Shown one piece after another: positions 4,235-59,778 of a stretch of 64,000 bases of DNA (within the stretch, counting starts at the first letter, position 1; each line of letters begins with the position of its first letter). The stretch lies in sequence record LC819009.1; one strand, written 5' to 3'. The notes under the pieces were generated by a model, which saw only the letters and a list, made by a program, of their open reading frames with translations, was not told the DNA's origin and did no database searches. The translations under genes were made by a program, and so were the position numbers.

Positions 4235-4262
4235 CTTCTACTCCATTTTAAAAAGATTAAAC

Positions 4263-8683: not shown

Positions 8684-8703
8684 GTTGTACACCTTTTAAA
8701 AAG

Positions 8704-15099: not shown

Positions 15100-15190
15100 T
15101 AGCCTCTCCTCATTTTAAAAAGTTGGTGTTTCGGTACAAAATAAAAAGCCCCGCTATGAAAAATAACGGGGCCTAACATCACCTCCCTAA

Positions 15191-16855: not shown

Positions 16856-16877
16856 TTTCTTTCTCCGTTTTAAAAGG

Positions 16878-22480: not shown

Positions 22481-22599
22481 TCACCTGTAATTATTTTAAA
22501 AACGGACTGTCCTGTTATTAGGACAGGCTTTTCCCCCCAGGTTCAAACATTATCGCAGACGAGTTAGTTTTACTCGCTTGTCTACAGAACTTCAGTTGG

Positions 22600-25693: not shown

Positions 25694-26227
25694 TTAATAA
25701 CTCCGGTTCGATAGGCGCTGAGCCGTTACCACGTTTTGTGGAAAGTCATTCAGTTCGTCGAAATGACTCTCATGTACGTCCACCCTGAAGGTGAAGTTAT
25801 TGATCTTGGTGATCTCGGTGACAGCAGTCAGATCGCTCGTGTAATGAGGATCGTCCTCATGACCACGAGGCATCTGGTGAGGCGCGAAGTAATAGCCTGC
25901 ACCTTGTAGTTCTGAAAACACTTCTTCACCGCAGAACAAAATCAGATCTCTTAAGCGATCCCGGTCCAGATGTGAGAGATGGTATCGACCAATCCCAAAC
26001 TGATTCAGGATGCTATATGCGAGATCTTCGAGATTCTGTTCGCATGCGGCCATTGATCGCGGAAACATTGCACACGCGGTCATGACTTCTTCCATGAAAG
26101 CATAAAACGTCAACGCTTTCAGAAACCGGTAATACTCAGGCCATGGTGCGATTTGTGCTAGCTCGGTCTCCTTAACGAACTCTTCGTAAGAGCGTTTGAG
26201 CCTTATAACAAAAGTGAGTTGTGCCAT
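25694..26227 (-). CDS. Hypothetical protein
   Basis: 177-aa ORF. Confidence 0.65.
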   Translation of the reverse strand: MAQLTFVIRLKRSYEEFVKETELAQIAPWPEYYRFLKALTFYAFMEEVMTACAMFPRSMAACEQNLEDLAYSILNQFGIGRYHLSHLDRDRLRDLILFCGEEVFSELQGAGYYFAPHQMPRGHEDDPHYTSDLTAVTEITKINNFTFRVDVHESHFDELNDFPQNVVTAQRLSNRSY

Positions 26228-26636
26228 TTCGCAGGGGATGTTTTACAACGATTGCAAAATTGGAACGAGAGACTGGAATGACCCTGACGGGTCGAGTTCC
26301 TCTCTCACGGATGTAATCGAAAAGATGAATGTCTTCAAACATCTCCACGATAGATTCGCAGATTGCGTATAGAATACCGCAGATCTTCACATACGGCTCG
26401 TCTTGCGAGAAAACGTATTCCTGGATGATCCCCTTATCGTAGAGTTTACCGATCAGGTACTCAATCTCATTTATTTGTTGCCGTGCTTCTTTAGCATTTT
26501 CCATTCCTTCAGTCAGGAACTTAACTAACTCCTCCAACAGATCGCGACGGTTAACGTCCTCGAACATCCCGGTCGTATCGAAACGACGTATATGGCGATC
26601 AATGTTGAAGATCACACCGAATCGATATTTCGCCAT
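26172..26636 (-). CDS. Hypothetical protein
   Basis: Start MAKYRF just after the terminator hairpin. Confidence 0.65.
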   Translation of the reverse strand: MAKYRFGVIFNIDRHIRRFDTTGMFEDVNRRDLLEELVKFLTEGMENAKEARQQINEIEYLIGKLYDKGIIQEYVFSQDEPYVKICGILYAICESIVEMFEDIHLFDYIRERGTRPVRVIPVSRSNFAIVVKHPLRNGTTHFCYKAQTLLRRVR

Positions 26637-26650
26637 GATTACCCAATTAG

Positions 26651-26691
26651 AAAAAGATCCCCGTCCAGACCCGAGAGGGTCTGGATCGGGG
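26651..26691 (-). terminator. Intrinsic terminator
   Basis: CCCCGATCCAGACCC-TCTC-GGGTCTGGACGGGG followed by ATCTTTTT. Confidence 0.8.
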
Positions 26692-26808
26692 CGACACTTA
26701 TGACACGACAGGATCAACGGCTAAATCGGATCACTCACCATGCCATTAGTCCCGAGAGAATAGCGCCCGAGTCGAGGAGAAGACTCTGGAGATGGGCAGC
26801 TATTCAAT
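26651..26808 (-). ncRNA. Candidate small RNA with anti-SD (CUCC) motifs
   Basis: Bounded by the promoter motif and a U-tailed terminator; nested 5' stem; no ORF longer than 6 codons found. Confidence 0.5.
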
Positions 26809-26811
26809 TAG

Positions 26812-26828
26812 GTAATATATCGGTGAAA
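26812..26828 (-). promoter_or_regulatory. Putative early phage promoter
   Basis: TTTCACCGATATATTAC. Confidence 0.75.
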
Positions 26829-26832
26829 TCAA

Positions 26833-28074
26833 TTACACCGCTGCCGGCTTGAAACGGATCGGCGGATGCGACTTGTAGTACACCGTCAGGCGAGTGGAGT
26901 CGAACTGCGTCACGTCTTCCAGAGTCGGGTCGACAATGATGCGTGCCGGTTCCATCGGCGTGCGATCCAGCTGCTTCTTCACGCCTTCATGCTGGTCGTG
27001 GTAGATATGGTAGTCACCCATGAAGTGGGTGTATTCCCACGGCACGAAACCCGTGACTTCAGCGAGCAGGTGAGCGAGCAGCGAGTACATGCCGACGTTG
27101 AACACCGTGCCAAGCGGCACATCCTGCGAACGAGCGAAACATGCGAGCGAGAGCTTGCGTGCAGTGAAACCGCCGTCGAGGATCTTGTCGACTTCAAGTT
27201 GACCTGCTTCGGTGAGTTCGAGTTCGCTGTCATTGCCCAGGTTGTACTGCATGTTCTTGCCGACGAGCAGACCGCGAGTCACGAGCTCGTTGTTGATGCG
27301 CGTCTTGTAGTACAGTTCCTGCGCTTCGTGCGACAGGCCGCGCATTCCTCCGAAGACTTCCTTGAAGATCGCGACTGCGAAGTCTTCCTGATCCATCGAG
27401 TAGCGCAGGACTTCGAACGCCGACATCGGAGCCGTGTTAACCTGCCACATCGAGTGACAGGGAGCGAGTGCCATGCGACCGGCGTCTGCGTTCTGTGCAG
27501 GAGTCATCGACGTATCGGGCAAGAGACCCGCATGCCACACATTCACAACCAGACGACGGCTGTCCGGATTGTTCTTGAGTTCGTTGACGATGTTCATCAA
27601 CTGATCCACGCCACCCGAACCACCTTCTTCGAACGTCTTGTACTTCGGTGCGATCTTTTCGTCCATGAACTGACGAATGTCTGCGACGTTGATGTCGACA
27701 GAACCGATCTCTTCTGCGAACTGATCGAGCATTTTGTGCACGTCGGCGACGCTCATGCCGGTCGTCCAGTTACGCCACTGCTCGCCATACATCGGTCCGA
27801 TCGTGCCGCTTTCCGGACCCGTCCACGAGTTCCAGATCTTGTTGTCGCGGTCTTGCAGCCAGTCCACCGAGATGATGCCCTTGAGCATCCATTCGAGTTC
27901 TTCGGCGATCTTCTTCCATGCCACTTCACGCGTGGTCGGAATCGGCCAGATGCCGTGACGAAGCGAGAACTTCATCATGCCGCCGAACTTCGAAGTCGTA
28001 CCCGTGCCGGTACGATCGGTCTTCACATCGCCCGTTTCCAGGATGTCTTTCAAAACGTCGAGATACTGTTTCAT
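26833..28074 (-). CDS. thyA: Thymidylate synthase with two insertions
   Basis: DRTGTGT, YGEQWRNW, PDSRR, LAPCH, RSQD..LG..FN, GDYHIY motifs. Confidence 0.95.
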   Translation of the reverse strand: MKQYLDVLKDILETGDVKTDRTGTGTTSKFGGMMKFSLRHGIWPIPTTREVAWKKIAEELEWMLKGIISVDWLQDRDNKIWNSWTGPESGTIGPMYGEQWRNWTTGMSVADVHKMLDQFAEEIGSVDINVADIRQFMDEKIAPKYKTFEEGGSGGVDQLMNIVNELKNNPDSRRLVVNVWHAGLLPDTSMTPAQNADAGRMALAPCHSMWQVNTAPMSAFEVLRYSMDQEDFAVAIFKEVFGGMRGLSHEAQELYYKTRINNELVTRGLLVGKNMQYNLGNDSELELTEAGQLEVDKILDGGFTARKLSLACFARSQDVPLGTVFNVGMYSLLAHLLAEVTGFVPWEYTHFMGDYHIYHDQHEGVKKQLDRTPMEPARIIVDPTLEDVTQFDSTRLTVYYKSHPPIRFKPAAV

Positions 28075-28109: not shown

Positions 28110-28490
28110 TTACAGACGAATTTCCATGACCGACAATCGAGTGCCGGGCTTAATGATTACTCGCTCGGGAAGAGGAATGCAACTGATCTGTTCCAGATAC
28201 TTTTTAAAGTAATACATCGTCTCTTCAACTCGCAGCAGATAGGACATTACGTCTGCTGGGAGCCTGCCGAGTCTTTCTCTGATGTCGATTTCAACATCGT
28301 CCAGGAATTCACACAGGACGTAATCAAAATCGTCGCCATCCCGAACCATTTGTCCTTGCAGTCTTTCGACCAATTCCTCACAGAGTTCGAGATAATCGTA
28401 TTCTATAAAAATCGGCTGTTCTTCTCTTAACAGCCGACTGATGCGTCTTTTCTCGTAAGTATCACCGACGAGGTAGCGGGTTTCTCGCAT
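28110..28490 (-). CDS. Hypothetical protein
   Basis: 126-aa ORF. Confidence 0.6.
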   Translation of the reverse strand: MRETRYLVGDTYEKRRISRLLREEQPIFIEYDYLELCEELVERLQGQMVRDGDDFDYVLCEFLDDVEIDIRERLGRLPADVMSYLLRVEETMYYFKKYLEQISCIPLPERVIIKPGTRLSVMEIRL

Positions 28491-28840
28491 TTGCGTATCA
28501 ATCCGAAAAGCGACAACGGACTAACGTTGTAGATCTCGAAGTCTCCTAATGAATCTAGAAGTTCGAACTGTTGCAACTGTCTAACCATTTGCTTAGCCAA
28601 CTTCGCAAGCTTCCGTAGAATCTTGTTGGCCTTTTCAAAAGTATTTCCTTGAGCATAAAGATAGCGACGGGTGCCTTCCAGGTAGTATCTCAAACTTTTG
28701 GAAGACTTCTTCACGCCGAATACTCGGCTCACCCGAAGATGTTCGTAAAATCCTTCCAGAAGTTTAAAATATCGCCGCTTAAAGCGAACGAGCTTTGGGA
28801 CTGGCTTTTTAAAGCCAAAAAGAAGAATGTCTGTTTTCAT
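28427..28840 (-). CDS. Basic hypothetical protein (start uncertain)
   Basis: Open frame directly downstream of the promoter motif; AT-rich. Confidence 0.5.
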   Translation of the reverse strand: MKTDILLFGFKKPVPKLVRFKRRYFKLLEGFYEHLRVSRVFGVKKSSKSLRYYLEGTRRYLYAQGNTFEKANKILRKLAKLAKQMVRQLQQFELLDSLGDFEIYNVSPLSLFGLIRKCEKPATSSVILTRKDASVGC

Positions 28841-28881
28841 GCCAATGAAAGGTTGATATGAAATCAACTTACAACAAAGTT

Positions 28882-28898
28882 GTAATATATGGCTGATC
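28882..28898 (-). promoter_or_regulatory. Putative early phage promoter
   Basis: GATCAGCCATATATTAC. Confidence 0.65.
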
Positions 28899-28978
28899 AA
28901 AACTGGAATAAAATGGACATAAAGGATACCAGGAGGCACGAAGCCTCCTGGTACTCTCACTCAGTCCTGACTAGCAGG

Positions 28979-37003: not shown

Positions 37004-37345
37004 TTAGCGGGAATGCGCCATCGTCCGATGCACAGGACGCACCGGCGCGAGGCCGGCATACGAATACAGATGCGTCGGATCGATTCCTGCCATCTTGGCG
37101 TGGTGGAACAGTTCTGCGATCACTTCCGGACTCATCTTCGGAGCGTGGGTATGGCCCTTGAAGAAGAACGAGATGGTGATCGGATTGCGTGCACCTTCCT
37201 TGAGCCAGGTGCCGACGATCGCGCCATGTTCACCCTTGCCTGCTGCTTCCGGTCCGAACAGAACTTCGTACTTGTTTTGACGGTCGGTGTTGATGAAACC
37301 CAGTTTGCCCAGAATCGTTTTCATTTGGAATATCCTTTCAATCAT
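37004..37345 (-). CDS. Hypothetical protein (start may be ATG 37324)
   Basis: ORF after TTTTAAAA. Confidence 0.6.
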   Translation of the reverse strand: MIERIFQMKTILGKLGFINTDRQNKYEVLFGPEAAGKGEHGAIVGTWLKEGARNPITISFFFKGHTHAPKMSPEVIAELFHHAKMAGIDPTHLYSYAGLAPVRPVHRTMAHSR

Positions 37346-37382
37346 TTTAAAAGTAGGGGACCGTAGTCCCCCGGTATACTAC

Positions 37383-51010: not shown

Positions 51011-53929
51011 ATGGGCACTATCCGTGACATCATGAACGACGCGCTGGCGGCGTCCTATGACCCTAGCGGTCAGTTCAGAGCGTCGATGCGCACGCTCGTA
51101 GCAATCATGAATGGGGAGATCGATGACGTCTCTCCAGCCAACCCCGTGGTGATGACCATCGAGAACACGGGTGCGTTGATCGCGGCGTTCACTGAGAGCA
51201 TGCAGACTCAGACTCAGCGGCTCTTGCAGGTGAACGCTCTGACGCCTGAGGACCTCTATCCTCACATGGCGGACGTACACTTCACCAACATCTTCAATCT
51301 GCCGGCCAAGTCGACATTCACTCTGATTCTGGATAAGAAAGAGATCCTGAACCAGATGAAGCCGATTCCTGGCACGATGTCGAGCAAGGTGACGATTCCT
51401 CGCAACTCGTACTTTACGGTCTCGGATTACGTCTTCGGTATTCACTATCCGATCGATATCATCCAACAGGTGCATGGTGGAATTCGTGTTCAGTATGACA
51501 CGAGTATGCCGACTGCTCTGGAAGCGTTGTCGACCAACATCCTGAATACGCGTGAAGTTCAGCGTGACGGGGTGACGTATCTGGCAATCGACATCGACGT
51601 CTTCCAGTTCGACATTGCGAGTAAGACACCGGTAGTGACCCAAGGCACTACCTTCAGCTTCAACGTGGCGATCACGGATCTGTATTACGCGACCCGTGTC
51701 TACATGACGAATGCTGACGGCTCGTACTCCGAGATCCCGGTAACGTACAGCGAGAAGATCTATGATCCTCTCAAGCCGTGTGCTGTGGTGAAACTGAGTG
51801 ATGGGAACGTCAATGTTTCCATCCCGCAGATCTACATCAACCAGGACATCATCCTGGGCACGCTGCGCATCGATGTCTACACCACGAAGGGACCGCTCCA
51901 GACCGATTTCTCCAGTTTCGCTATTGGTTCGGTAGGCTACCGCTTCAGAGACCTCGATAAGAACGCTGTAACGACGTATACGGCCCCGATGACGCAGTTG
52001 GATACCTGCATCATACTGGCGGAGCAGCCCGTCTCTGGCGGCGCTCTGGCGATGACCTTCGACGAGTTGCGTACAGCCGTGATTGCCGACGCAATTGGTG
52101 ATCCGAACCTGCCGATCACGCCTGCCCAGATTCAGAACTTCATCACGCGTCTTGGCTACGACGTCATCAAGAATACCGACATCGTAACCGACCGTGTGTT
52201 CCTGGGCACGAAGAACATGCCGGACCCGACCGATCCGTCTTTGCTCACTGCTGCGAACGCTTCTATCGAAACGATGAATGCGGCGTTCACCGATCTGATT
52301 GGTAACTCGGCAGTGATCGACAACACGGCGGATTCGAACTCCATTACCTTGACGCCTAAGGCTATCTACCAGTTGGTCGATGGCATGCTCAAGCTGGTGG
52401 ACGACTCGACTCTTGCTTCGATCAATGCAATGCGCAGTGATCTGAAGGCAACTTACATCACCAATGGTGGTTTCCTCTATTCGCCGTATTACTACGTGCT
52501 GGATAAGAGCAACAACCAGTTCCGTCTTGCGCCTTACTACCTGGATAATCCTCAGGTGCTGTCGCAGACGTTCGTCGAAGACAACGAAGGCACGCTCCTG
52601 CAAGTCAACACCAACGGGTACACGCTGGTGAAGACGGACTCGGGCTACACGCTTCGTCTGACAGTCAAATCCAACGACGACTACAAGGCTTTGCAGGACA
52701 CGGACGTACAGTGTCTGCTGGGCTTTAAGTCGCCCACGGAAGAAGATCCCTGCTGGCTCACGGGTACGCTCTACGGAACGGATCCCACGAGCAAGGAACG
52801 GATCTGGGAATTCGATCTCTCGTCCAAGTTCGCTATGGACGTCACCGATCGGATTGACTTCCGTAACTTCAAGATGTACGACACGACCGACAAGACGATC
52901 TTCGCAAGCCTCACGCAAGACTTCACGGTTATCTACGCGACTCAATCGCAAATGGGTAACCTCTTCGTGCCTGGTCTGATCGACGCATTGCTTCCGCGTT
53001 ATCTGGTCGGCCTGAATAGCAAGGCGATCTGTCAGGAGAAGCTGACGCTGCAGTTCGGTCAAGCTTTGTCCAACCTCTGGGCACGTGCTCGTTCGGTTGC
53101 TTCCACGATCGAATACGAAACATACCCGACCGACGTTATCCTGCGTTACACGGACGACGTCTGGAAGGTGGATCCGGCAACCAACAGCACGATCTTCATG
53201 GTCGACGGCAAGCCGACGCGCATTCTCCTGCATGCGAAGAACGATCCGATTCTGGATGCTAATGGAAACCAACAGGTTCAGTATCCGGCTGGTTCGATCG
53301 TGTATGACTACACGCAGAATCCGCCCGTGCCGATCGTCAAGAACGTTCGTTATCTGAAACATCGCTTCGAGCTCTTCCTGATCGAAGGCGTCTATGCGTT
53401 CAGTAACGACGACATCGCTGTTGCCTATCGTAACACTGTTGCTCAGACGGTGGCTTCGTGGGTGACAACCGACATGGTGAACGTTCAGAAGGCTTCGATG
53501 GATAAGACGCGAGTCTACTTCTATCCGAAGACTATCTTCGGCACCATCGAGGTTGTGGTGGCCGATGGCATCATCCAGCAGATCTCGGCAGGTCAACGTT
53601 TCGACGTTGCTCTGACTGTGACCAAGGAAGTCTATCAGGACGACGTTAAACGTCAGCTGCTGACCAATCAGACGACGACGGTGATTGCCGCCTATCTGAA
53701 AGGCCAAACACTTTCCAACAGCGACATCGTGGAACAACTTCGTGCAAGTTATGGCGAAGACGTTCTGGATGCTCAGGTATCGCTCTTTGGTGATGCTGCG
53801 AACATTCCGGTGATGCAGTTGGTCAATGAAGTTCATTGTTGCGGTATTCGTAAACGACTGGTGTCGCGTGACGACAACAAGCTGGTCGTGCAGGAAGACA
53901 TTAACGTGACCTTCACGATGATTCAGTAA
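51011..53929 (+). CDS. Large virion structural protein, baseplate-wedge-like (phiKZ gp87 position)
   Basis: 972 aa; SPANPVVM and GGALAMTFDELR motifs; synteny. Confidence 0.7.
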   Translation: MGTIRDIMNDALAASYDPSGQFRASMRTLVAIMNGEIDDVSPANPVVMTIENTGALIAAFTESMQTQTQRLLQVNALTPEDLYPHMADVHFTNIFNLPAKSTFTLILDKKEILNQMKPIPGTMSSKVTIPRNSYFTVSDYVFGIHYPIDIIQQVHGGIRVQYDTSMPTALEALSTNILNTREVQRDGVTYLAIDIDVFQFDIASKTPVVTQGTTFSFNVAITDLYYATRVYMTNADGSYSEIPVTYSEKIYDPLKPCAVVKLSDGNVNVSIPQIYINQDIILGTLRIDVYTTKGPLQTDFSSFAIGSVGYRFRDLDKNAVTTYTAPMTQLDTCIILAEQPVSGGALAMTFDELRTAVIADAIGDPNLPITPAQIQNFITRLGYDVIKNTDIVTDRVFLGTKNMPDPTDPSLLTAANASIETMNAAFTDLIGNSAVIDNTADSNSITLTPKAIYQLVDGMLKLVDDSTLASINAMRSDLKATYITNGGFLYSPYYYVLDKSNNQFRLAPYYLDNPQVLSQTFVEDNEGTLLQVNTNGYTLVKTDSGYTLRLTVKSNDDYKALQDTDVQCLLGFKSPTEEDPCWLTGTLYGTDPTSKERIWEFDLSSKFAMDVTDRIDFRNFKMYDTTDKTIFASLTQDFTVIYATQSQMGNLFVPGLIDALLPRYLVGLNSKAICQEKLTLQFGQALSNLWARARSVASTIEYETYPTDVILRYTDDVWKVDPATNSTIFMVDGKPTRILLHAKNDPILDANGNQQVQYPAGSIVYDYTQNPPVPIVKNVRYLKHRFELFLIEGVYAFSNDDIAVAYRNTVAQTVASWVTTDMVNVQKASMDKTRVYFYPKTIFGTIEVVVADGIIQQISAGQRFDVALTVTKEVYQDDVKRQLLTNQTTTVIAAYLKGQTLSNSDIVEQLRASYGEDVLDAQVSLFGDAANIPVMQLVNEVHCCGIRKRLVSRDDNKLVVQEDINVTFTMIQ

Positions 53930-57681: not shown

Positions 57682-59778
57682 ATGGATAATATTCTGTTGC
57701 TCAACAAGAGGAACAAAACAGCAGTTTACCCAAGTGATCTGCTGGTCATTGACATTGACAGAACCTGTCCGATTCTCGGAAATCCGTTTCCGATGAAGGA
57801 CAAAGACGACGATGAAGAACGCTCTTTTGTGATCGATTCATACCGTCGGTATTTTGAAAAAGAGTATACCAATAATGGGATACTCACCAAACGAATTCAT
57901 GAACTTGCAGACCTGGTTCGCTCTGGTAAGCGGATCGGTCTTCGCTGCTGGTGTCACCCTAAACCGTGTCACGGCAACATCATCATCTCCAAGATCAAAA
58001 AACTACTGGAAGGAAACATGTCTGAATCGCCTCAACAACCCAGTAAAGAGTTTCTGAACTATCCCTTCGCAAAGGAAGACATCGATTACGTCGAATGTCG
58101 TTTCGCTATCCACATTCCGAAGGATCGAAACAACGAGAAAGGTATCGACCTTCATGCAGTTAAGGAAATCATTCACTTCAAGGATGGCACGACCAAGCCG
58201 TGGGTGAAGTACATTCCGAACTACCAGTGCAAATTCTGGACGACGAAGCCTCATGTTCGTAACGGCAAGTTTGCACACAAGCAGAAGAAAGAATGGGAGT
58301 CGCTCGATAACCTGATTGAAGGTCAGGCTACCGCTTCCGGCATGGGCTTTGCTGTTGCTCGTGCGCTGGATCAGATGCGTCTGGCTGATCGTTATTTCGA
58401 TCTGAAGGATTCGCCCTACGTCTACGGTCTGGATATTCCGTCGACGGTGCAACTCAAGCACGACTACACCGTGCGTATGCAGGGTAAGGCTGATACGCCG
58501 TTTACCATCGCCTATTCTGATACTGAAACGAACATGCTCGGTATCGAAGAAGGTGCTTCGAAACACATCATCATGCAGTCGCTCTTCCATCAGGATGGAC
58601 GTCTGTTCACGGTGATTCTCGAAGACTTCGTGAAGACGCTGCCTAATCCGCAGAAAGATCTTCGCGCCCTCTATGACGAACACATGCCTGAGCAAGGCAA
58701 GGAACTCGTCAAGGATTGGGAAATCGCAATCGTCAAAGAACCGATCGACATCGTCAAGGCAATTTTGCAACGTTGCCATACGTGGCAGCCTGACTTCCTG
58801 TCGTTCTGGAACATGATCTTCGACTTGGACAAAATGATCCAGTGCGTTGAAGACGCCGGTTATCGCCCAGAAGACATCTTCTGCGATCCTCGTCTGCCGC
58901 GTGAGTTGCGTTATGCATACCTGAAGCGCGCTAACCCGAGCAAGACGTCGGCATCGGGTCGTCTGATGACCAAGAAGCCTGCCGACCAGTGGCATAGCTG
59001 GCTATGTCCTGCCTCGTTTTACATCATTGACCAGATGGCCACCTACCGCTTCGTTCGTAAATCGAAGCAGCTGGAAAAGTCTTACGGTCTGGATGACATT
59101 CTGGGCAAGGAACTCGAAGGTCTGGGTAAGCTTAAGCACAAGCCTGCTGAAGGTTTGACTAAAGCTGAATTCCACATCTTCATGCAACAGAAATATCCTG
59201 GCGAGTATGTGATCTATCACATCTGGGATGCGGTCTGTATGCACCTGCTGACATTGAAGACGAAGGACTTGTCATTCTCGTTGCCAGGTACGACGGAGTT
59301 CTCGGACTTCATGAGCTTTGAATCGGAACCGAAGCGTTACATCCACAAGTTCCATTTCTACGCATTGGAAAACCATCGATGCGTCACTGGTGTATCCAGT
59401 AAAGCTCTGGTGCAAGAATACGACGACATGACCATCTCCACCAAAGGTCACATCGTTACTCTTGAACCACACTTGACTGTGGATTCGGGGATGAAGATCT
59501 TCAATGATTATCCCGAGCTACAGACAAACTTCTACGGCCATAATGCTGACCTGGACGTCAAGTCCAGTTATCCATACGGCCAGTGGGTTTTCAACATGTC
59601 GCGTACGACGACTGTTCGAGAACTCGTTGAGATCGAAGGTGTGCGTGATCATGTTCGCCGCATCCAGGGTCTTAACATCTCTGGTGGACGCAGTAATGCA
59701 GTTGAATTCTGTACTGAGATCTTCGGTCTTCCGACTCTTGCCGAACTCGACAAGATTTACGATCAAGCAAATGCATAA
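57682..59778 (+). CDS. Split family B DNA polymerase, exonuclease/motif-A subunit (phiKZ gp82-like), with N-terminal DUF4326-like domain
   Basis: ExoI YSDTET, ExoII FWNMIFD, ExoIII YHIWD, motif A DLDVKSSYP; N-terminal LGNPF...LRCWCHPKPCHG; AAGGTG RBS before ATG 57682. Confidence 0.85.
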   Translation: MDNILLLNKRNKTAVYPSDLLVIDIDRTCPILGNPFPMKDKDDDEERSFVIDSYRRYFEKEYTNNGILTKRIHELADLVRSGKRIGLRCWCHPKPCHGNIIISKIKKLLEGNMSESPQQPSKEFLNYPFAKEDIDYVECRFAIHIPKDRNNEKGIDLHAVKEIIHFKDGTTKPWVKYIPNYQCKFWTTKPHVRNGKFAHKQKKEWESLDNLIEGQATASGMGFAVARALDQMRLADRYFDLKDSPYVYGLDIPSTVQLKHDYTVRMQGKADTPFTIAYSDTETNMLGIEEGASKHIIMQSLFHQDGRLFTVILEDFVKTLPNPQKDLRALYDEHMPEQGKELVKDWEIAIVKEPIDIVKAILQRCHTWQPDFLSFWNMIFDLDKMIQCVEDAGYRPEDIFCDPRLPRELRYAYLKRANPSKTSASGRLMTKKPADQWHSWLCPASFYIIDQMATYRFVRKSKQLEKSYGLDDILGKELEGLGKLKHKPAEGLTKAEFHIFMQQKYPGEYVIYHIWDAVCMHLLTLKTKDLSFSLPGTTEFSDFMSFESEPKRYIHKFHFYALENHRCVTGVSSKALVQEYDDMTISTKGHIVTLEPHLTVDSGMKIFNDYPELQTNFYGHNADLDVKSSYPYGQWVFNMSRTTTVRELVEIEGVRDHVRRIQGLNISGGRSNAVEFCTEIFGLPTLAELDKIYDQANA

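Follow-up and report, generated by a model that had tools for sequence, protein, structure and literature searches.

We identified a small structured RNA that is very probably the product of a real non-coding RNA gene. The window belongs to Ralstonia phage FLC4-5C (LC819009.1; 100% identity by megablast), which is one of the phiKZ-like jumbo phages in the genus Chiangmaivirus. The gene lies on the minus strand inside a 196-nt intergenic gap, with gp169, the thymidylate synthase gene (thyA), upstream and gp168 downstream. It comprises a conserved promoter and three stem-loops (SL1, SL2 and SL3), the last of which is an intrinsic terminator. From the invariant C/U-rich apical loop of SL1 we tentatively read the RNA as a stand-alone Chiangmaivirus regulator that would act by anti-Shine-Dalgarno (anti-SD) base pairing.

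Positions refer to the window, i.e. the whole analysed stretch of 64,000 nucleotides, in which a position equals the LC819009.1 record position minus 124000 (genome size 225.6 kb). The comparison comprised 11 deposited records in total, with FLC8, FLC4-11C, FLC6, FLC4-4C, RSL2, RsoM3USA, RSF1 and SURPRISE13 as relatives; all belong to Chiangmaivirus, whose phiKZ-like jumbo phages infect Ralstonia and Burkholderia glumae. None of the deposited Chiangmaivirus annotations that we examined lists the RNA. Wider relatives were found in metagenome assemblies by a protein search with gp168, and their contigs all show thyA, a gap and gp168. For the coordinates of all features see Table 1.

Table 1. Features of the RNA locus of FLC4-5C and its surroundings (window coordinates).
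Feature	Position	Strand	Remarks
Early-type promoter 17-mer TTTCACCGATATATTAC	26812–26828	−	100% identical in all RNA-carrying relatives
phiKZ-type promoter core TATATTAC	26819–26812	−	five bases downstream plus TG reach 26805
Predicted transcription start	G26805	−	G of the conserved TG, seven bases past the core; first base of SL1
SL1	26758–26805	−	lower stem GAAUAGC.GCCC / GGGC GCUAUUC, 5'-side bulge, 5-bp upper stem, apical loop
SL1 outer stem GAATAGC/GCTATTC	26805–26799 and 26764–26758	−	GCCC/GGGC and GAGTC/GACTC nested inside
SL1 bulge AUCUCCA	26787–26793	−	second CUCC copy; predicted fold
SL1 apical loop UUCUCCUC	26774–26781	−	hexamer CUCCUC invariant
SL2	26692–26754	−	long imperfect hairpin; missed in the initial annotation, found by folding
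SL3	26659–26691	−	intrinsic terminator stem-loop; 14 pairs, G+C-rich
U tail AUCUUUUUCU	26649–26658	−	merges into a degenerate CTTTTTAAAA-type element preceding the gp168 SD and start codon
gp168 (neighbour, outside the RNA)	26172–26636	−	154 aa, uncharacterised protein
gp169, thymidylate synthase gene thyA (neighbour)	26833–28074	−	stop codon at 26833
TTTTAAAA, example sites	4246–4253, 8694–8701, 15113–15120, 16868–16875, 22494–22501, 37345–37352		minus-strand genes

The promoter 17-mer had been singled out in the initial annotation as a perfect motif. It is indeed present, and it matches the early motif described in the literature for phiKZ and 201phi2-1 (PMC7598289, PMC11512511). Its core TATATTAC occurs three times in the window against 0.23 copies expected, a number that none of 100 shuffles reached. 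Genome-wide there are 8 exact copies, all on the minus strand, which share a context of a T-rich stretch, GA, the core, five bases and TG (the TG spacing is kept in 6 of the 8). One copy lies within gp59 (record position 59533) and another almost abuts the annotated start of gp47 (record position 51108). Published predictions give this core as the promoter of phiKZ, and the extended promoter string of 201phi2-1, with a T-rich stretch, TATATTAC and a final TG, has the layout found here (PMC7058600, Table 2). The site upstream of the RNA thus has the sequence features of a phiKZ-type early promoter: it is AT-rich and contains the core, the upstream T-rich stretch and the downstream TG.

Motifs of this type are centred near position −10 of early transcripts of the virion RNA polymerase (PMC7598289, PMC8244752), and in 201phi2-1 the final base of the motif coincides with the transcription start or is close to it (PMC11512511). 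Based on these distances and on the TG spacing we place the start at approximately G26805. The RNA would then extend over 155 nt to position 26651, in good agreement with an earlier estimate of about 160 nt for the unit. By analogy with these phages we infer that the RNA is transcribed from a virion-RNA-polymerase-type early promoter. A search of the literature yielded no transcriptome of a Chiangmaivirus, and the multiplication of RSL2 and RSF1 is rifampicin-sensitive (PMC7598289); the term "early" is therefore used for this genus by analogy alone.

The minimum free energy of a 163-nt stretch covering the locus is −71.4 kcal/mol, compared with −48.9 ± 3.7 kcal/mol for dinucleotide shuffles (z = −6.05; reached by none of 200). 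The opposite strand gives a weaker fold of −60.5 kcal/mol with a diffuse ensemble. Among 7 distinct sequences, 96.7% of the cells in the alignment were paired and 13 pairs had changed on both sides; with 10 distinct sequences these values rose to 98.1% and 17, with 45 further pair types, and in either alignment none of 500 shuffles reached the observed values. Sliding the pairing partners by 1–3 columns in the 10-sequence alignment reduced pairing to 33–43%. The structure, for which a covariance-model search in related phages had been suggested at the outset, is therefore conserved among them. The compensatory changes fall mostly into SL1 and SL3. The G-U pairs identify the minus strand as the transcribed one, because read from the opposite strand they would be A-C. 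Compensatory changes, strand-specific G-U pairs and the lack of a conserved reading frame (see below) are together what is expected of a structured non-coding RNA.

Across nine deposited genomes the promoter, the bulge and the apical loop of SL1 and the segments GGGACTAATGGCATGG and GATCCGATTTAGCCGTTGATC are unchanged; variation is seen in the upper stem of SL1 and in the stem of the terminator. For three divergent relatives the promoter is 100% identical, and nucleotide identity amounts to 76–85% for the RNA and 60–79% for the flanking genes. The RNA is conserved as well as or better than the flanking genes, and better than gp168. FLC4-5C and FLC8 have identical RNAs, with 90.6% identity for ThyA and 91.6% for gp168.

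In SL1 the three nested stems described initially (GAATAGC/GCTATTC, GCCC/GGGC and GAGTC/GACTC) were all found at their positions. When SL1 was folded alone, 8 homologues gave the same minimum-energy architecture, and 6 pairs of helices 1 and 2 have changed on both sides. The apical hexamer CUCCUC is unchanged in 10 of 10 distinct sequences, and four of the five pairs beneath it change. This pattern of substitution indicates strong purifying selection on the C/U-rich apical loop. The bulge is less constrained: it reads AUCUCCA in most relatives, AACUCCA in relative L227 and AUUGCUA in L230, where the CUCC copy is lost. Of the proposal that both loops carry CUCC, the part concerning the apical loop holds throughout, whereas the bulge copy, though present in FLC4-5C, varies. 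As a separate observation, the last thyA codons (26831–26845) pair to 73% with the 5' arm of SL1 (26795–26809). SL1 could thus fold differently in thyA read-through transcripts and in the primary RNA, although this pairing is probably due to chance.

SL2 shows a different kind of conservation. Hardly any changes are seen across the relatives in its 5' strand (GGGACUAAUGGC) and in the GUGAUCCG...GCCGUUGAUC part, and its 3' strand is variable and keeps the pairing through many G-U pairs. Structural support for this hairpin therefore comes mainly from invariant and G-U pairs, unlike the compensatory changes of SL1 and SL3. A 5' strand that stays invariant while the 3' strand merely adapts points to a second function, possibly the binding of a protein or of the ribosome. 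An invariant AUGGC in SL2 (26726–26748, minus strand), located 3 nt downstream of a GGGA and in an invariant start context, opens a mini-frame of 3–8 codons. It reads MAW* in the FLC phages; in four lineages it reads MAWxxDPI*, and L227 and L230 have MARNR*. As the product is not conserved, a coding feature is probably absent here.

The strong U-tailed terminator that had been noted at 26651–26691 was recovered as the 14-bp, G+C-rich stem of SL3 followed by AUCUUUUUCU, i.e. the arrangement of an intrinsic terminator. Nine of its 14 pairs have changed on both sides across the relatives. The U-run consists of five U residues and is invariant; three bases (AUC) separate it from the stem. We also considered whether a 5' CCUAAUU might pair with the SD region of gp168 and dropped this idea, because the predicted start at 26805 lies downstream of CCUAAUU.

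The element into which the U tail merges is widespread in the genome. The palindrome TTTTAAAA, mostly within CTTTTTAAAA, occurs at 27 sites in LC819009.1. At about 20 of these a strong GGAG-type SD follows immediately and the start codon lies 10–20 nt downstream; at least four directly follow a terminator hairpin, with the T-run merging into the motif. At two genes the palindrome overlaps the ATG itself. The TTTTAAAA/CTTTTTAAAA element may serve this genus as a middle/late promoter element or may enhance translation. The copy before gp168 is degenerate in the FLC phages (CTTTTTCTAAT) and near-perfect in L227 and L230 (CTTTTTAAAT). Hairpin, T-run, A/T-rich motif, SD and ATG thus form a generic intergenic layout, and SL3 need not be an attenuator specific for gp168.

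FLC4-5C contains two open reading frames at the locus, one of 86 codons on the plus strand (26592–26852) and one of 28 codons starting with TTG on the minus strand. Both are broken by indels or stop codons in relatives, and no reading frame on either strand is conserved across the lineages, in line with the earlier statement that the unit contains no real ORF. The locus is therefore very unlikely to hold a small protein gene, whichever the strand, or to be a mere chance hairpin: the substitutions follow the pattern of a paired RNA, and the shuffles never reached the observed fold. ARAGORN detected no tRNA or tmRNA in the window. A replication origin or R-loop primer was considered as well and dropped, as the GC skew does not change at the locus.

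The RNA is present in a single copy per genome. Scanning the window and the rest of the genome with the covariance model R1 returned this locus alone, with other terminators as weak matches. The model detects the RNA in relatives L227, L228, L229, L230, L231, L234 and L235, always between thyA and gp168. In IMG/VR an exact 21-mer was found in RSL2 and RSF1 only, and searches with 14- and 15-mers gave chance matches only. The SL1 pattern did not occur in the metagenome contigs; its one match in the genome collection, in a coding region of a Fusobacteriaceae MAG, was a chance match that the covariance model rejected. Nor was the RNA found in the plasmids and E. coli genomes searched. Among the collections searched, the RNA thus appears only in the Chiangmaivirus-type phage lineage, as far as sequence comparison can tell. 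The next ThyA relatives, which would form an outgroup, are at most 31% identical to FLC4-5C ThyA. Within the group, the most divergent relative (L232:2909-3030) keeps the gene order and has neither SL1 nor SL2. There, thyA is followed by a promoter-like TATATCAT, approximately 45 unrelated bases, a different terminator, TTTATTTAAAAGG and the start of gp168. The RNA was therefore either gained within the group or lost in the L232 lineage, and not every relative depends on it.

Several observations concern the neighbouring genes. Searches of Pfam and PHROG assigned gp168 to no family, and a structural search with its predicted structure (pLDDT 78.5, a fair model) returned no informative match. 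Thymidylate synthases usually have about 265–280 residues. The gp169 product has 413. Two of its segments match Pfam PF00303, the best match aligning residues 2–214 with profile positions 1–154 of 266; the enzyme therefore seems to contain extra inserted sequence. Further downstream, gp167 is annotated with 133 aa (25694–26095). A 177-aa ORF starting at 26227 (25694–26227, minus strand) matches phrog_28923 end to end, keeps its full length in 11 of 11 records and is also the version called in metagenome contigs. Its overlap with the end of gp168 amounts to 56 nt. Among the Sendai isolates the region 25694–28074 shows mosaic relationships. FLC4-5C shares an identical RNA and an identical gp167 with FLC8 and FLC4-11C, its gp168 is 99.4% identical to that of FLC6 and FLC4-4C and 91.6% to that of FLC8, and its ThyA is only 88–91% identical to those of all these phages. 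This suggests recombination break-points around the locus. Upstream, the annotated plus-strand CDS gp171 (28649–28861) is probably wrong. The minus strand there carries a perfect early-promoter core (28882–28889) with 5' hairpins and then an ATG near 28839, from which an ORF (MKTDILLFGF...) runs to 28427 (region 28427–28960).

Taken together, the data allow a tentative mechanism to be outlined. Transcription would start at about G26805 from the putative early promoter for the virion RNA polymerase. The RNA would fold co-transcriptionally into SL1, SL2 and SL3 and end at the U tail near 26651 after about 155 nt. The same sequence would also terminate thyA transcripts; SL3 is the first terminator downstream of gp169, and the thyA mRNA should therefore carry the RNA as its 3' UTR. 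The single-stranded CUCCUC of the SL1 apical loop, which is complementary to GAGGAG, would pair in trans with Shine-Dalgarno regions of the type GGAG or GAGGAG, assisted in most relatives by the AUCUCCA bulge. Binding of the 30S subunit would thereby be hindered on a subset of host mRNAs and/or on the phage's own middle and late mRNAs with strong SDs. SL2 would serve as a stabilising or partner-binding domain.

For the comparison with anti-SD sequences we used the motif quoted in PMC4615179 and the SD sequences of the phage itself. A GGAG is present at −22 to −4 in 20 of the 63 annotated genes of the window, so that the loop would pair with these phage genes too; the strongest duplexes in the window are predicted for gp148, gp159 and gp190. 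No GGAG precedes gp168 or the genes that come first behind the other early promoters, a sample too small to count. We also looked for a specific target in the phage genome, where the longest complementarities, one 13-mer on a non-coding strand followed by 12-mers and 11-mers, are at chance level.

We consider anti-SD pairing the best single mechanism, although at this stage a tentative one. It is favoured by the identity and invariance of the promoter, by the fold, by a fixed loop on top of a covarying stem, by conservation relative to the flanking sequences, by the lack of a conserved ORF, by SDs in the phage that match the loop and by the known class of sRNAs with such loops. Against it, a seed of 6 nt would hit many phage genes as well, the search of the phage genome returned no specific target, SD masking leaves the invariant stretches of SL2 unexplained, L230 has lost the bulge motif, and the L232 lineage does without SL1 and SL2. 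The five-U tail also speaks against it, as Hfq-dependent sRNAs typically differ from this. The initial view of a trans-acting RNA that masks ribosome binding sites thus retains its promoter-to-terminator unit, its RNA-level structure on the minus strand and its conserved C/U loop, but the CUCC copy in the bulge is not universal. A bolder and unlikely version would have an abundant anti-SD mimic, made from one of about eight early promoters, masking strong SDs transcriptome-wide in a nucleus-forming jumbo phage. If true, this would be an RNA-based rather than protein-based shut-off of host translation, or a timer that delays the strong-SD late mRNAs of the phage.

The invariance of the sequence exceeds what SD pairing over 4–6 nt would need, and this brings in a protein partner as a possible, if doubtful, alternative. 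The RNA would then be a decoy, sponge or scaffold that sequesters or recruits a host or phage RNA-binding protein or the ribosome without pairing to mRNA, and the (A/U)UCUCC elements of SL1 together with the invariant strand of SL2 would be the recognition sites. The occurrence of two similar motifs on one hairpin, the fixed GGGACUAAUGGC and GUGAUCCG...GCCGUUGAUC opposite an adapting SL2 strand and the absence of extended complementarity to phage transcripts in our searches are consistent with such a role. Conversely, no known class of protein-binding motif was recognised in the RNA, it matches no Rfam family, and the neighbouring proteins give no hint of RNA binding. A live but weaker rival is a cis-acting leader of gp168. 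In that case the promoter would drive gp168 and later genes, SL3 would be an attenuator, and SL1 and SL2 would form a domain for sensing or stability. Premature termination would leave the short RNA as a by-product, like several "5'UTR-derived sRNAs" of 201phi2-1, where 8 of 11 sRNAs arise by termination in 5' UTRs (PMC11512511). The constant position between thyA and gp168 fits such a leader, as do the distance of only about 20 nt from the end of SL3 to the gp168 start codon and the lack of a perfect promoter motif between SL3 and the ATG in FLC4-5C. An attenuator or riboswitch leader is expected to have mutually exclusive folds, and these were not found, although a gene lies downstream. Neither the covariation nor the folds revealed an antiterminator: the terminator arm covaries only with its own partner, and the terminator arms vary freely while the upstream parts are fixed. 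The gp168 start region is unpaired in the read-through fold. Moreover, terminator, A/T-rich motif and SD are a common layout in this genome, with the near-perfect motif before gp168 in L227 and L230, the L232 lineage retains the promoter-like site, a terminator and gp168 without SL1 and SL2, and the RNA is more conserved than gp168.

The position of SL3 as the first terminator past the thyA stop codon would also agree with a module that is merely the 3' UTR and terminator of the thyA mRNA, shielding it from 3' exonucleases, with a fortuitous promoter-like string. We regard this as improbable. The last thyA codons vary but the promoter 17-mer keeps 100% identity, a 3' stabiliser would not need invariant loop and strand sequences, and L232 ends thyA with a simple hairpin.

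To our knowledge, the number of non-coding RNAs with a known function is very small in strictly lytic phages, and in phiKZ-like nucleus-forming phages no such RNA has been characterised. With its single copy, exact predicted ends, a structure proven by covariation and an invariant 6-nt loop, the RNA described here is a clean candidate. Should the loop pair with ribosome binding sites, it would provide an RNA route by which jumbo phages reprogramme translation; were the RNA to bind a protein, a new RNA-binding factor of host or phage origin would be indicated. The RNA is absent from the annotations of all 11 Chiangmaivirus genomes deposited, where it merits an entry, and it would make a new RNA family model.

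No match was obtained with Rfam 15 over the whole window at gathering thresholds. With cmscan of 26600–26860 at E ≤ 10 the sole match was a chance hit of 13.8 bits to a microRNA model on the opposite strand. Membership in a known RNA family, including RF02278, 6S RNA, riboswitches and cuckoo-type models, was rejected on these grounds, and the RNA is classed as a new family of small RNAs with a C/U loop and a terminator at the end, encoded here by a lytic jumbo phage. Exposed C/U-rich anti-SD loops on covarying stems are an established class of sRNAs with an established mechanism (PMC4615179). The closest likeness of this kind is to the cuckoo/CcsR RNAs (RSs0680) of Alphaproteobacteria, in which the loops also expose a C/U-rich, anti-SD-like motif that alone is conserved while the stems covary, and the cuckoo motif CCUCCUCCC has the phage hexamer CUCCUC at its centre (PMC4615179). 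That family is defined by 2–4 adjacent hairpins, each with the 9-mer in its loop (PMC4615179). In the phage RNA, by contrast, only SL1 has a C/U-rich loop, with the motif in a shorter form (UCUCCUC, core CUCCUC) and a second copy in a bulge, and the loops of SL2 and SL3 are unrelated. It further differs in its large unrelated SL2, in being phage-encoded with betaproteobacterial hosts and in giving no cmscan match.

The RNAIII and Rsa RNAs of Staphylococcus follow the same principle, as their exposed C-rich loops (UCCC) make the first contact with G-rich ribosome binding sites (PMC4615179). These RNAs are host-encoded, come from a Gram-positive bacterium, have known targets and show no homology to the phage RNA in sequence or structure. 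Within the same phage group, sRNA005 of 201phi2-1 and the phiKZ sRNA upstream of gp182, both found by ONT-cappable-seq, likewise consist of a promoter closely followed by a terminator and are conserved across related phages, a comparison made by description only (PMC11512511). They are transcript-mapped, lie upstream of a tail gene and have no reported anti-SD loops (PMC11512511), whereas the FLC4-5C RNA follows thyA and is predicted from its sequence. The "toxic small RNA" RF02278 of Burkholderia resembles the phage RNA in being small and terminator-ended and in its betaproteobacterial lineage; its members are chromosomal and 57–92 nt long (PMC4603805), and the phage RNA does not match the model even at E ≤ 10. 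The c4 antisense RNA of the phages P1 and P7 shows no homology, belongs to temperate phages, has one specific cis-linked target (ant) and is processed from a longer transcript, but it is also phage-encoded and blocks translation by pairing of its loops around a ribosome binding site (PMC12197685).
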